Shown: in pieces, positions 5,591 to 60,350 of the stretch | How the letters are laid out: the number at the start of each line of letters is the position of its first letter | Position numbering within the stretch: position 1 is the first letter of the stretch | Sequence record: MW021758.1 | Length of the DNA: 64,000 nucleotides | Direction: 5' to 3' (one strand) | Notes under the pieces: model-generated | What the model saw: only the letters and a program-made list of their open reading frames with translations | Database searches by the model: none | Told to the model about the DNA's origin: nothing | Position numbers and translations under genes: made by a program

Positions 5591-5607
5591 GTAATATAGA
5601 CCTGAAA
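5591..5607 (-). promoter_or_regulatory. phiKZ-type early promoter
   Basis: Minus strand TTTCAGGTCTATATTAC. Confidence 0.75.
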
Positions 5608-11457: not shown

Positions 11458-11487
11458 GGTTATATAGACTTGAAAAGTAATGGAAAT
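11458..11487 (-). promoter_or_regulatory. Early promoter, bipartite subtype
   Basis: Minus strand ATTTCC-N12-GTCTATATAACC. Confidence 0.7.
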
Positions 11488-12376: not shown

Positions 12377-12415
12377 GGTTATATAGACACCAAAAAAATT
12401 GGAAATGGATATAAT
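12377..12415 (-). repeat. 39-bp exact repeat copy 1 containing an early promoter
   Basis: GGTTATATAGACACCAAAAAAATTGGAAATGGATATAAT identical to 34250-34288. Confidence 0.9.
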
Positions 12416-12416
12416 C

Positions 12417-12446
12417 CCCTCAGTAGACCATTAGGTCTACTGAGGG
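12417..12446 (-). terminator. Hairpin terminator
   Basis: 13-bp stem CCCTCAGTAGACC-ATTA-GGTCTACTGAGGG. Confidence 0.7.
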
Positions 12447-14640: not shown

Positions 14641-14657
14641 GTGATATAGGCGTAAAT
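14641..14657 (-). promoter_or_regulatory. phiKZ-type early promoter
   Basis: Minus strand TTTACGCCTATATCAC. Confidence 0.7.
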
Positions 14658-22235: not shown

Positions 22236-22252
22236 GTGATATAGATGTGAGA
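22236..22252 (-). promoter_or_regulatory. phiKZ-type early promoter
   Basis: Minus strand CACATCTATATCAC. Confidence 0.65.
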
Positions 22253-28566: not shown

Positions 28567-28652
28567 TCATCAGGCCAGGAGAAATGCGCATTATTCATAA
28601 TACGTTCCCTTTAGGTTAAAAATAAGGGAGAGGAATTAACCCCTCCCTACGC

Positions 28653-28901
28653 TTAGTTACTGATACAGATAACTGACACGATATAGACGTACAGCGAAAC
28701 GTACTGGACGATAATAGCCCATTTGGCCTCGCGGTATTTACTAACGAAGAGTCCGACCGCTACAATGAAAGAAACGATCGAAGCGATAGGCGCGATCCAG
28801 AAAGGAACGACATCGTGAAAGTTAGGAACGGCGAGTGCCAAAGTTAACACCGTCAAACACGCCAGTGTAACGGCAATGGCAACCTTACACGCACTACTCA
28901 T
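28653..28901 (-). CDS. Three-TM membrane protein
   Basis: Hydrophobic throughout. Confidence 0.75.
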   Translation of the reverse strand: MSSACKVAIAVTLACLTVLTLALAVPNFHDVVPFWIAPIASIVSFIVAVGLFVSKYREAKWAIIVQYVSLYVYIVSVICISN

Positions 28902-29475
28902 ATTTCCCCTCCCGCCAATGTTTACGGCAGACAGCTACGTAGCTATCGTTACCCCCAATCTGAACCTGTGGGCCAGAACGCAGAACCTTACCCTCGCCAT
29001 CCAAACGGAGAACGTGAGTAGATTTAGAACCGCACCAACAGATCGATTTGATTTCTACCAACTTGTCAGCCATTGCTAACAGTCGAGCAGATCCAGGGAA
29101 CGCTTCGCCACGGAAGTCGTTACGTAGCCCATAGCAGAGCACTGGGATATCCATAGCGTCTACGATGAAGGCTAACTGACTTACTTGAGCAGCAGTGAGG
29201 AATTGAGCCTCATCAACCAGGATACAATCCAGCTTTCCGTTTAACAAAATGTCGTTACGGATATAGCTTGGAAGATCCATCTCTTCACGGATGATGACAG
29301 CTTCAACGTGAAGGCCGATTCGACTGACGACTTCTTGCTCAGAGTCACGCGTATCGATTGCAGGCTTCATTACCAGAGGACGCATACGACGTTCACGGTA
29401 GTTGTAGGCCGACTGAATAAGCGTGGTCGATTTCCCTGAGTTCATGGAAGCGTAGTAGAAGTAAAGATTTGACAT
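28894..29475 (-). CDS. tdk: Thymidine kinase
   Basis: ASMNSGKST, VDEAQF, YGLRNDF, CWCG and CRKH zinc ligands. Confidence 0.97.
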   Translation of the reverse strand: MSNLYFYYASMNSGKSTTLIQSAYNYRERRMRPLVMKPAIDTRDSEQEVVSRIGLHVEAVIIREEMDLPSYIRNDILLNGKLDCILVDEAQFLTAAQVSQLAFIVDAMDIPVLCYGLRNDFRGEAFPGSARLLAMADKLVEIKSICWCGSKSTHVLRLDGEGKVLRSGPQVQIGGNDSYVAVCRKHWREGKYE

Positions 29476-29487
29476 CTAGCGATTCCT

Positions 29488-29787
29488 TTAAAGCGTGAAT
29501 ACCTCAAAGTACCAGGCCGTAATAACACAACCCAGAACCGATCCCAACGCACACCAGATAACCGCGTTGGTGACCGAGGTAACGATCTTAGCACGGAGAA
29601 TCCACAGTACTGCCAGATTCTCAATGATAATCGACGCAATGAAAATAAAGACCAGTTGGTTGTAAATGTCTTCAGGTTCAACCAAGAACTGGAAGTACCC
29701 AAAGACAACCACCACGAATTGCACGAGGTAGATTAAGTTCTCTACCGCCCCGCCACGACGCGGGTATTTTTGGTCAGTCTTTAGCAT
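29488..29787 (-). CDS. Membrane protein
   Basis: Three hydrophobic segments. Confidence 0.7.
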   Translation of the reverse strand: MLKTDQKYPRRGGAVENLIYLVQFVVVVFGYFQFLVEPEDIYNQLVFIFIASIIIENLAVLWILRAKIVTSVTNAVIWCALGSVLGCVITAWYFEVFTL

Positions 29788-30103
29788 GGTGAATGCTCCG
29801 TCGTTTAGACTTGTTATCGACTCTCTCGTTCTCCATCGACGTAGTGATCCTGGCTACAACGTAACCGAGGAACGAAGTGAAGGGCAGGAAGCCGAGATGA
29901 CTCCAGTCTTTAGTAATAGGTGCGATAACCACAAAACCAAAGATAGTCATAAGACCAGCTGCGACCAACACCCAAGTCGTCGCTCTAGTCAACTGACCAA
30001 TGACTTCAGAGTGACGAATCCCGATGAACGTGAAGGTTGACACCACGAAGAGAACGAAGTAAAAGCCAGACAGGAAATTCTCAGAACGAATATACTCTAT
30101 CAT
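29774..30103 (-). CDS. Membrane protein
   Basis: Three hydrophobic segments. Confidence 0.75.
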   Translation of the reverse strand: MIEYIRSENFLSGFYFVLFVVSTFTFIGIRHSEVIGQLTRATTWVLVAAGLMTIFGFVVIAPITKDWSHLGFLPFTSFLGYVVARITTSMENERVDNKSKRRSIHHAKD

Positions 30104-30104
30104 T

Positions 30105-30416
30105 TTAAATGTCCATGATGTAGAAAAGGATCGTTAATGAAACGGCGAATGAAATACTTGGGATCATCGACAGGTAATCCAAGTACCCTTTCTCCAGCCA
30201 CGCCTTGAGGCGATTCGTACTACGGAAGATACCGTAGCTATAAAGCATAATGCAAACGACTACTCCGGAGAAACCCAGCGTAGTAATAACCATGAGTGTA
30301 TCTTCACTGAGGTCTTTGTAGATCACTGAGAAAATATAAGTAAGTGCAGCAGCATAAATCGGAACAATCAACGTAAGTAAACGGGGCACAACGAATCTCC
30401 TTATTAGACAAAACAA
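30105..30416 (-). CDS. Membrane protein
   Basis: Three hydrophobic segments. Confidence 0.7.
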   Translation of the reverse strand: MFCLIRRFVVPRLLTLIVPIYAAALTYIFSVIYKDLSEDTLMVITTLGFSGVVVCIMLYSYGIFRSTNRLKAWLEKGYLDYLSMIPSISFAVSLTILFYIMDI

Positions 30417-30425
30417 AAAATAGAG

Positions 30426-30445
30426 GGCAGGGAACTACCCCTGCC
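30426..30445 (-). terminator. Terminator closing the acidic-peptide unit
   Basis: GGCAGGG-AACTAC-CCCTGCC, U-tract on -. Confidence 0.75.
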
Positions 30446-30456
30446 GAAGAACGAAC

Positions 30457-30573
30457 TTAATCGTCTTCATCCTCTACTTCTCCAACTTCCAGCTCTTCCT
30501 CTTCTTCGTCCAATTCCCCCGCAGCAGCAGAACAAAGAATAGCACCCATGATAAAGTCCAAGAAATCACCCAT
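30457..30573 (-). CDS. 38-aa acidic micropeptide (MGDFLDFIMGAILCSAAAGELDEEEEELEVGEVEDEDD)
   Basis: Manual translation; SD GGAG; lies between promoter 30618 and terminator 30426. Confidence 0.8.
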   Translation of the reverse strand: MGDFLDFIMGAILCSAAAGELDEEEEELEVGEVEDEDD

Positions 30574-30617
30574 CTTTAAAAACTCCAATATGTTTTATTA
30601 AATGTTCATTCAAATAA

Positions 30618-30634
30618 GTGATATAGTTCTGAAA
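30618..30634 (-). promoter_or_regulatory. phiKZ-type early promoter
   Basis: Minus strand TTTCAGAACTATATCAC followed by TTATTTGAAT (as at 60334). Confidence 0.75.
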
Positions 30635-30647
30635 AGAATTCGAATAA

Positions 30648-30671
30648 GGTAGAGAGCCGAAGCCCTCTACC
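30648..30671 (-). terminator. Terminator after phoH
   Basis: Minus strand GGTAGAGGGC-TTCG-GCTCTCTACC. Confidence 0.75.
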
Positions 30672-30677
30672 CAATGG

Positions 30678-31463
30678 TTACGAATAAATCTCCAGACCCA
30701 GCTGACAGATCGGTGAACGCACGCAGTCATCCTTAACGAACTTGATTACGGGAATGTCAATATCCCGTTCTTCAATACGACGAATCAGATCAAGCAGACC
30801 TGAATCGTTTTTGTTTGGCAGATCGCACTGCTCAATGTCGCCATTGATAATTACAGTGGAGTTCATGCCGATACGCGTAATGAAGAGACGCATCTGGTTG
30901 ACAGTAACGTTCTGAGCTTCGTCCAGAATGACAACCGCATCATCGAATGTACGACCACGCATATAAGCGAAAGGTGCAATCTCGACTTTCTCGATCATCG
31001 GTTTCAGGCAATACTCGAGGAAGCTATTACCCAGGCGTTTACGCAACACGTCGTAAACTGGACGGAAGAACGGGCGGAATTTTTCGGAGATGTCACCGGG
31101 CAAGAAACCCAGATCTTCTTCAGCAGTCAACACAGGACGCGTTACGATAATCCGATCAGTCTCTTTTGCCAGAAGACGATCAGCTGCCCAGGCAGCGCAG
31201 ATATAGGTTTTACCTGCACCAGCAGAGCCCGTAGACACGATGATGTTGCTTAGTTCTAAAGCGTTAAGGTATTGCGCTTGGTTATCGTTACGTGGCTCCA
31301 GAGGGCTTGTATCGCGCTTCTCTTTAGCCATGCCGATAACGTCGTGACCACCGGCAGTTGGGAACTCTACCAGATTATCAATGCCACGATTGTTTTGTCT
31401 TTTTGCTTTACGAACATCGCGACGTTTAACTGTCGCGGCTTTTTGACGACCCATCTGTACCAC
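30678..31463 (-). CDS. phoH: PhoH-like ATPase
   Basis: GSAGAGKT, LGFLPGD, AYMRGRTF, LDEAQN, GDIEQCD. Confidence 0.95.
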   Translation of the reverse strand: MVQMGRQKAATVKRRDVRKAKRQNNRGIDNLVEFPTAGGHDVIGMAKEKRDTSPLEPRNDNQAQYLNALELSNIIVSTGSAGAGKTYICAAWAADRLLAKETDRIIVTRPVLTAEEDLGFLPGDISEKFRPFFRPVYDVLRKRLGNSFLEYCLKPMIEKVEIAPFAYMRGRTFDDAVVILDEAQNVTVNQMRLFITRIGMNSTVIINGDIEQCDLPNKNDSGLLDLIRRIEERDIDIPVIKFVKDDCVRSPICQLGLEIYS

Positions 31464-34249: not shown

Positions 34250-34288
34250 GGTTATATAGACACCAAAAAAATTGGAAATGGATATAAT
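34250..34288 (-). repeat. 39-bp exact repeat copy 2 containing an early promoter
   Basis: Identical to 12377-12415; terminator hairpin 34293-34320 lies just upstream. Confidence 0.9.
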
Positions 34289-34331
34289 AGGACTCTCCTA
34301 GGGAATGATCCCTAGGAGAGCTTCTGTGCGT

Positions 34332-40366: not shown

Positions 40367-40383
40367 GTAATATAGGCTTCAAA
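40367..40383 (-). promoter_or_regulatory. phiKZ-type early promoter
   Basis: Minus strand TTTGAAGCCTATATTAC, downstream of terminator 40411-40429. Confidence 0.8.
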
Positions 40384-48749: not shown

Positions 48750-48766
48750 GTAATATAGACGTTAAA
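48750..48766 (-). promoter_or_regulatory. phiKZ-type early promoter
   Basis: Minus strand TTTAACGTCTATATTAC. Confidence 0.8.
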
Positions 48767-49469: not shown

Positions 49470-50330
49470 TTATACTTCTTCGTCTTCTTCATCGGCGATA
49501 AACGCAGTGTACTGATCGAATACAACTTGACCCAGTGAAGTGAGTTCAACGGAACCATGGTGCGGGTTACCGGCGTAACCGATCAGCGACAGGTCGAGAA
49601 GCGCATTGAACGTTTCTACCGGGGTATACTCGTACTCTTCACGATAGAGGGTGCCGTTCTCAGCTACGCGGATCAGTAGACTGGCGCCACCTTCAAGTTC
49701 ACGAAGCATTTGGATCAGCTCAGGGACGGTATATACCATCTTAAGAGCATCGCCAGTACTTGGCAGGTCTTTGATCACTACCTTAGACCCAGTCGCCTTC
49801 AAGCGAGCTACAGCTGCCATGATGTCTGGTGTTTCACTGACAACTGACAGATCATCGGACTGCAGGGTAGTTGAAACCCCGGCGCTTTCCAGTAAGCGAT
49901 ACAAGATAGCAGCGACCGATGTTTTACCGGCGCGTGCTTGACCAGTGATTTCGATAGTCACTACTTTAGGATCGTGTCTAACGTAACGACGAGGGCTACT
50001 CATCAGTTCCTTCAGTTCATCAGTTGGTGCTGGTTCAGCTGAGATGGCGTTGAGCAGATTGTTCCAACCTTCTTCACCCAAGAGACGAGTGATCGTGTAC
50101 GCCATGTTCCATCCACTTGGCGCAAAAGCAATGTGACCAGAACAGCTGTTACCGTCTTCGCACATTGTGAGAATCGGATTAATTGCATCCCTGACGTCTA
50201 CGTCCTGCAGTTCGTATTTTTCCACCAGGGTATTGAAAGCCTTCTTGCGCCAGTCCTTATCGCCATGATCCACGATGATGGAAATTGGTTGGGCCGGGTT
50301 GTGGATATTGGTATCGATTCTGTATTTCAT
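49470..50330 (-). CDS. Mosaic protein with central P-loop module
   Basis: IEITGQARAGKT Walker A. Confidence 0.7.
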   Translation of the reverse strand: MKYRIDTNIHNPAQPISIIVDHGDKDWRKKAFNTLVEKYELQDVDVRDAINPILTMCEDGNSCSGHIAFAPSGWNMAYTITRLLGEEGWNNLLNAISAEPAPTDELKELMSSPRRYVRHDPKVVTIEITGQARAGKTSVAAILYRLLESAGVSTTLQSDDLSVVSETPDIMAAVARLKATGSKVVIKDLPSTGDALKMVYTVPELIQMLRELEGGASLLIRVAENGTLYREEYEYTPVETFNALLDLSLIGYAGNPHHGSVELTSLGQVVFDQYTAFIADEEDEEV

Positions 50331-60333: not shown

Positions 60334-60350
60334 GTAATATAGCTGTCAAA
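60334..60350 (-). promoter_or_regulatory. phiKZ-type early promoter
   Basis: Minus strand TTTGACAGCTATATTAC-TTATTTGAAT. Confidence 0.8.

Follow-up and report, generated by a model that had tools for sequence, protein, structure and literature searches.

On the minus strand of a jumbo Serratia phage genome, a promoter, a Shine-Dalgarno (SD) sequence, an ORF encoding a 38-aa acidic micro-protein and an intrinsic terminator form a compact cassette of about 200 nt, which is conserved in three phage lineages and whose ORF, judged by its substitution pattern, is very probably a real translated gene. The analysis covered the window, i.e., the whole 64,000-nt stretch of record MW021758.1, and it confirmed and strengthened the observation made in the initial annotation: all four elements reported there are present, the cassette is conserved, the gene is probably early, and reading the product as a nucleic-acid mimic is a reasonable hypothesis. 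The gene itself is already in GenBank, where the 117-nt CDS is annotated as a hypothetical protein in all eight records of the genus (e.g., CPT_Moabite_275 and Yaphecito gp250), so that its description as invisible to the ORF track applies only where short frames are removed by a length cut-off. The present analysis adds evidence for selection, two homologs that are clearly diverged, an assignment of the promoter class and the operon context.

On its 5' side the cassette is bounded by a hairpin that ends the upstream PhoH gene (30647-30672; 11-bp stem, -18.8 kcal/mol, z -4.6). The promoter follows at 30606-30635, composed of TTTTCAGAA, the core CTATATCAC at 30626-30618 and a downstream box TTATTTGAATGA, and was assigned to the phiKZ-type early class by motif statistics, conservation and match to the consensus. 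The SD sequence GGAG (30583-30586), common to the three lineages and annotated as ribosome-binding site at this position in the Moabite record, lies 9 nt 5' of the ATG at 30573. From there the CDS extends to 30457, including the TAA stop at 30459-30457, and is supported by GenBank annotation, pN/pS and codon usage. Codons 2-18 (30520-30570) encode a predicted hydrophobic helix, based on AlphaFold2 and the three-lineage alignment, while codons 20-38 (30460-30516) encode a polyacidic tail that is predicted to be disordered, as indicated by composition, AlphaFold2 and alignment. The stem of an 8-bp GC-rich hairpin (30445-30426, -15.5 kcal/mol, z -4.5) begins 11 nt after the stop and is followed by CTCTATTTTTTGTTTTG; hairpin and T-run together (30409-30445) represent an intrinsic terminator or attenuator, recognized by folding energy and positional conservation. 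Further 3', AAGGAG and a spacing of 7 nt precede the GTG at 30389, the start of the next gene, which opens a downstream block (28625-30402) without an early motif of its own according to ORFs, annotation and motif scan.

The source phage belongs to the genus Moabitevirus, jumbo phages with genomes of ~275 kb. Positions 30100-31000 of the window are 100% identical to Serratia phage vB_SmaM_Yaphecito, and the same stretch shows 98.9-99.9% identity to 2050HW, BUCT660, Moabite, Haymo, Kodama and Pectobacterium phage ParM-25. By homology, the phage encodes both phiKZ-type RNA polymerases, virion and non-virion: the Yaphecito record shows matches to Pfam Rpb2_6 and Rpb1_2 and holds homologs of phiKZ gp80, a virion RNA polymerase subunit (34% identity, E 9e-48), and of phiKZ gp74, a non-virion RNA polymerase subunit (29% identity, E 2e-66). 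The genes around the cassette are small ORFans and nucleotide-metabolism genes. Across window positions 1-60000, sigma-70-like promoter matches numbered 17, 23 and 11 and were thus fewer than the ~29 in shuffles, and terminator-like hairpins reached about twice the shuffle expectation; this depletion and enrichment are consistent with a phage transcribed independently of the host polymerase. The nucleus-forming status of the phage was taken from a published table of chimallin-encoding phages, in which Moabite is grouped with PCH45, PhiEaH1, FBKp24 and KpLz-2_45 (PMC10299810, Table S1/S2), and not from our single-query search with phiKZ gp54 (chimallin), which returned no match, the protein being too divergent for such a query to inform.

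Within the genus the ORF is nearly invariant, with two substitutions, one synonymous and one G30/E30, and Moabitevirus genomes can therefore not decide whether it is coding. The G/E polymorphism lies at window position 30482 (plus-strand C/T) in codon 31, i.e., residue 30 after Met1; Yaphecito, Moabite and Haymo carry G, and 2050HW, BUCT660, Kodama and ParM-25 carry E, an allele also found on a wastewater contig. Two diverged homologs were obtained by database searches. An exhaustive HMMER search of 1.8 billion representatives gave a single match, the 33-aa protein P0002 on a 15-kb Logan metagenome contig (L053), and tblastn with P0002 recovered a 42-aa homolog in Serratia phage Totoro (TOTORO_01170, L062:2983-3111). 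In phage records, tblastn returned only Moabitevirus matches, a word-indexed protein search with the TTG-extended 43-aa form recovered the query alone, and the same kind of search with a two-sequence profile returned only the two clusters already known. A degenerate DNA pattern of the N-terminus had no match in IMG/VR and eight chance matches in JGI metagenomes, none of them related. PhoH-anchored synteny in IMG/VR and in Siatvirus KpLz-2_45, covering relatives of 55-67% identity, showed no small acidic ORF after PhoH, and a six-codon GAN pattern found acidic stretches in PCH45, KpLz-2_45 and phiKZ only within larger proteins and no analogous micro-ORF. Protein and nucleotide searches thus confine the gene to one phage clade.

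The comparison of the three lineages (window, Totoro and L053), with pN/pS calculated over an ungapped core of 26 codons, revealed pS values of 0.64-0.76 and pN values of 0.12-0.19 for the micro-protein in the three pairwise comparisons, corresponding to pN/pS of 0.19-0.25, with a Fisher p for the synonymous excess of 5e-5 to 1e-4. Synonymous sites are saturated in every gene compared between the lineages (pS 0.64-0.87), and the pN of the micro-protein is as low as that of PhoH (0.17) and thymidine kinase (0.19), at an amino-acid identity between lineages of 58-67%. Differences fall mainly on third codon positions (5/2/17, 6/3/14 and 3/3/11 for codon positions one to three in the three pairs), the frame stays open in all three lineages, and the two other frames hold several stops in L053, where in-frame stops directly before the ATG also fix the start codon. 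Low pN/pS, third-position bias and closure of the other frames together argue for a real protein-coding gene; as far as sequence comparison can tell, the micro-protein is under purifying selection and its amino-acid sequence matters. The per-codon usage score was 0.997 for the whole ORF and 0.72 for its non-acidic half, compared with 0.48 +/- 0.19 for 38-codon chunks of real genes and -0.85 for off-frame chunks. Four public runs labelled as RNA contained a few low-depth contigs of 150-215 nt, and the two of these over the ORF come from a probable DNA library, so that they do not count as evidence of transcription.

The initial annotation had further proposed that the peptide is produced at once on infection, and early expression is supported by analogy, through the motif match and the presence of both phiKZ-type polymerases. 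The window contains ten copies of the motif CTATATNAC, where 1.66 would be expected; all ten lie on the coding strand, and none of 100 shuffles reached this number. In the whole Yaphecito genome there are 14 copies on the coding strand versus none on the other strand, and 13 of the 14 lie within 158-247 kb. Besides the copy in the cassette, the window copies are located on the minus strand at 5591-5599, 11459-11467, 12378-12386, 14641-14649, 22236-22244, 34251-34259, 40367-40375, 48750-48758 and 60334-60342. Their aligned contexts read TTT-[C/G/A]-A-R-R, 1-2 nt, CTATAT[T/C/A]AC, about 5-6 nt, TG; a TTGA(A/T) box is additionally present at seven sites, and the ATG of the first gene follows 47-66 nt 3' of the motif, with 53 nt at the micro-protein site. 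Totoro and L053 both retain the motif core, the TTGAAT box and the GGAG ahead of their homologs of the ORF.

Two sub-types of the early motif can be recognized, one with T or C at position 7 and a downstream TTGA(A/T) box, the other being CTATATAAC followed by G+C-rich sequence. Near-identical promoter blocks of ~40 nt ending in TTTTTTTGGTGT-CTATATAAC are found at window 12386-12425 and 34259-34298 (minus strand), and as this block is also present in L053 (about 410-442), the upstream part of the promoter is conserved as well. At several early promoters a stem-loop, in some cases with a T-run, follows at a distance of 10-40 nt and ahead of the first gene (5559-5537, 11446-11433, about 22225-22195 and about 34235-34215, minus strand). 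Such stem-loops could represent 5' leader hairpins or attenuators; the micro-protein unit has no such leader stem-loop after its promoter.

Published early consensus sequences are TTTRARR_BTATATTAC...GTG for 201phi2-1 and TATATTAC for phiKZ (PMC7058600, Table 2), and the Moabitevirus motif matches both. Every jumbo phage with its own polymerases has been described to carry an AT-rich motif of ~10 nt near position -10 of early operons, which is the early promoter of the virion polymerase wherever tested, and the middle and late promoters of these phages are not predictable from sequence (PMC7598289). The Moabitevirus units resemble phiKZ-type early units (201phi2-1, OBP, N1M2) in their AT-rich core of ~10 nt, the TTT-R/C-A-R-R before and the TG after it, the clustering on one strand among small unassigned and nucleotide-metabolism genes, and the presence of both polymerase sets. 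They differ in the core CTATAT[T/C/A]AC and in the extra TTGAAT box in most copies, and their start and timing are inferred. Motif statistics, consensus match and conservation in combination leave the early assignment well supported by analogy, and the promoter of the micro-protein probably belongs to the early class. An explicit early-promoter consensus is thereby given for the genus Moabitevirus.

The composition of the peptide is extreme. It contains 16 D/E among 38 residues and no K, R or H, giving a net charge of about -16, of which the tail carries about -14, and the proposed count of 14 D/E in the last 19 residues was borne out. This acidic run has no equal in the 64 kb: among 686 six-frame ORFs, the second-ranking one reaches 9/19, and no other stop-free stretch of 19 residues in the window reaches 11 D/E. 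Elsewhere in the window, a 286-aa protein (49470-50330, minus strand) ends in at least six consecutive D/E at its extreme C-terminus (49477-49493). As the peptide contains neither K nor R, standard tryptic proteomics would miss it. AlphaFold2 in single-sequence mode predicted a helix for residues 2-18 and coil for the remainder, with a mean pLDDT of 70. The helix had been called amphipathic, which is overstated, since its mean hydrophobicity of 0.57 and hydrophobic moment of 0.22 describe a mostly hydrophobic helix with only a narrow stripe of polar or small residues at positions 3, 6, 10, 14 and 17. In the three-lineage alignment F4, F7, M9, A11, C14, S15, A17, A18, G19, E20, L21 and D22 are invariant, followed by the E-run, and replacements within the helix are conservative (D/E, I/L/M, A/S; one position G or K). 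The tail keeps its charge across the lineages, not its sequence or length. Conserved acidity, for which a tBLASTn search had been suggested, was indeed observed, the net charges in the three lineages being -16, -12 and -15.

Two features argue against a membrane span, a Kyte-Doolittle mean of no more than 1.41 over 19 residues and the occurrence of E and K within the helix of both relatives. A single-pass membrane or lipoprotein nature of the micro-protein was rejected, as the span is too polar and neither a signal peptide nor a lipobox is present, the residue before Cys14 being L or I and not G, A or S. Sequence profiles of Pfam, PHROGs, NCBIfam and PDB gave no match to the peptide, and the ESM Atlas yielded no usable match.

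At the 3' end, the initial annotation had described a complete transcription unit for one peptide. As an account of the structure this is fair, and the compact, conserved cassette stands, but the unit may not be closed, as read-through is likely. In the window, the hairpin is of the kind usual among terminators of this phage. The hairpin after the ORF in L053 comprises 9 bp (-16.3 kcal/mol, z -4.1) with a stem sequence unrelated to that in the window, and the Totoro sequence likewise has a hairpin with an unrelated stem at the same place; identical position with unrelated stems indicates that selection keeps the structure. Beyond it, the downstream block starts with SD and GTG at 30389 and comprises three small multi-pass membrane proteins, thymidine kinase and an 82-aa membrane protein, with the next strong terminator at 28648-28625. 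A scan of the window found no CTATATNAC between 30426 and 28625, and in all three lineages the next genes begin within 35-45 nt of the cassette without an early motif. For five downstream genes lacking an early motif of their own, this suggests that the terminator is probably leaky: partial read-through of the hairpin may yield much peptide mRNA and less operon mRNA. Alternatively, the downstream block may have an unrecognized later promoter.

The downstream gene order after the cassette is the same in L053 and Totoro, and the upstream neighbor varies: PhoH takes this place in the window and an HNH endonuclease in Totoro, and L053 has two extra genes there. A downstream neighbor that never varies next to a variable upstream one indicates that the cassette probably also heads an operon. 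The junction between PhoH and the cassette appears to be an insertion hot spot, occupied by the putative HNH endonuclease in Totoro (L062:1856-2911) and by genes for 329 and 126 aa in the Logan relative (L053:3480-4931). On the downstream side, four small multi-pass membrane proteins (82-109 aa) are interleaved with thymidine kinase at window 28653-30389 (minus strand); no relatives of these proteins were found in IMG/VR, and they diverge rapidly, with 28-54% identity between lineages and one at 72%. A membrane-protein block of this kind is unusual in an early operon of a nucleus-forming phage. A small-RNA reading of the cassette transcript was also rejected, since there was no Rfam match and the transcript without its terminator is not significantly structured (z -1.65); the apparent long hairpin arises from pyrimidine-rich codons for hydrophobic residues pairing with GAA/GAG codons.

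In the absence of a database match, the proposed function rests on anatomy and context. Our tentative reading, which we hold at somewhat less than an even chance, is that the micro-protein acts as a polyanionic decoy or inhibitor of a nucleic-acid-binding protein of host or phage. Following what is known of the promoter family, the injected virion RNA polymerase would read the CTATATCAC promoter right after infection, starting near 30611. Most transcripts would stop at the hairpin near 30410, giving an mRNA of ~200 nt with the peptide as its only product, and some would continue into the membrane-protein and thymidine-kinase genes. Judging from the anatomy, the helix (residues 2-18), which is conserved in sequence, would dock the peptide on a conserved partner, and the disordered tail, conserved in composition only, would fill a basic nucleic-acid-binding surface and compete with RNA or DNA. 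In a nucleus-forming phage the genome is shielded from DNA-targeting enzymes and the mRNA is exposed in the cytoplasm, which makes a target on the RNA side or a nucleoid protein at least as likely as a restriction enzyme; the degradosome, nucleoid proteins and host RNA polymerase would be candidate targets. The more specific version is rather doubtful: a micro-protein of 33-42 residues, produced by the injected polymerase within minutes, would combine a minimal helix anchor with a disordered polyanion and neutralize a conserved host RNA- or DNA-binding protein before the nucleus is formed. Possible targets of such a minimal mimic, to be viewed with similar caution, would be RNase E with its arginine-rich segments, host RNA polymerase or a nucleoid protein.

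Small acidic phage proteins are known competitors of nucleic acids, among them gp5.9 and phiKZ Dip. T7 gp5.9 is a small, highly acidic protein that mimics DNA in RecBCD as a helical dimer, and small size and acidity are properties tied to DNA mimicry in the literature (PMC9836394). With 38 aa, 16 D/E and no K, R or H, the micro-protein shares this size and acidity and, like gp5.9, has no homologs outside its own group and is early, in its case by analogy. It shows no sequence similarity to gp5.9, however, and what is predicted for its single chain is one helix: the fold of gp5.9 presents its charges in a compact, mostly helical dimer, whereas here they reside in a tail predicted to be disordered. 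The early phiKZ protein gp37/Dip displaces RNA from arginine-rich sites of RNase E by means of acidic patches (PMC4980113). The micro-protein comes from the same phage family, is acidic, early by analogy, and would act in a cytoplasm with exposed mRNA; unlike it, Dip is a much larger folded homodimer of novel fold, and the two are unrelated in sequence. The micro-protein thus belongs neither to the gp5.9 nor to the Dip family. The comparison with Ocr-type mimicry made in the initial annotation extends to the strong negative charge and, by analogy, to early expression shared with T7 Ocr and ArdA, but fails as membership: the micro-protein has about a third of their length, there is no match in Pfam, PHROG, NCBIfam or PDB, and the single-sequence AlphaFold2 model, at moderate confidence, suggests no folded scaffold with DNA-like spacing of carboxylates.

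The interpretation as a decoy has to be weighed against four others. It is favored by the lack of basic residues and by a predicted coil tail that retains charge without retaining sequence or length. On the other hand, similarity to any mimic family is lacking in Pfam, PHROG, NCBIfam and PDB, the gene is restricted to one phage clade, and known DNA mimics are folded proteins that hold their acidic side chains on a scaffold, while the acidic residues here lie in a low-complexity tail. Moreover, the conserved linkage to membrane-protein genes could mean a quite different role, e.g., that the peptide serves the small membrane proteins encoded downstream as a subunit or regulator, its helix packing on them and its tail facing the cytoplasm, at the inner membrane or at the early infection vesicle. 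We regard this role, as well as either site, as unlikely. The position of the cassette directly before the same membrane-protein and thymidine-kinase block in all three lineages despite a variable upstream side, the missing early motif between the two and the mostly hydrophobic helix speak for it, but neighborhood alone is weak evidence, the helix has neither the length nor the hydrophobicity needed to cross a membrane (Kyte-Doolittle mean 1.41, E and K in the relatives), and neither signal peptide nor lipobox was found. In addition, an identity of 58-67% for the peptide against 28-54% for the majority of the membrane proteins agrees poorly with the idea that they co-evolve. That the peptide instead acts on a phage protein, its acidic tail restraining in trans, for example, a DNA- or RNA-binding protein or its nuclear import until the nucleus has been assembled, appears quite unlikely to us; the same anatomy would serve, and clade restriction fits a clade-specific phage partner as well as a host target, so that the evidence does not favor one over the other.

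The remaining two alternatives assign the peptide little or no role. If the ORF were mainly a regulatory leader, translation or the hairpin would set the read-through into the downstream genes and the peptide would be incidental. Promoter, short ORF, terminator hairpin and promoter-less genes do represent a classical attenuator layout, which is conserved, and the window holds many more terminator hairpins than early promoter motifs. Yet a mere leader needs neither the strong purifying selection nor the conservative replacements observed, the distance from stop to stem varies (11, 7 and 3 nt), no alternative anti-terminator pairing stands out, and once the hairpin is removed the transcript is not unusually structured (z -1.65). 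As far as the published account of chimallin phages goes, transcription is kept apart from ribosomes, which makes translation-coupled attenuation unlikely within the limits of that account. Overall, we consider a leader function improbable. An ORF without function, i.e., a chance ORF or mis-annotation in an intergenic leader, would agree with its very short length, the low-complexity tail and the lack of detectable homologs outside one clade, but it is at odds with a pN/pS of 0.19-0.25 at saturated synonymous sites, with differences mostly at third positions and with this frame alone being open, as well as with the conserved SD sequence and a codon usage above that of average real genes, the non-acidic half included. 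Sequence comparison has largely refuted this explanation, to which we assign a very low probability.

To our knowledge, most early genes of nucleus-forming jumbo phages are ORFans that have not been studied, and the way in which these phages deal with the host during the first minutes, before a nucleus exists, is poorly understood. With its own early promoter and terminator, a constraint like that of the neighboring enzymes and an extreme but simple chemistry, the micro-protein provides a clean, small candidate for a host-takeover function among such genes. If the interpretation as a decoy is true, one docking helix with a disordered acidic tail would suffice to mimic a nucleic acid, and a host factor would be identified that the Serratia phages of this genus, which are of therapeutic interest, must neutralize. 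In the more specific version given above, the micro-protein would be the smallest mimic known, working by a fuzzy electrostatic rather than a folded mechanism.
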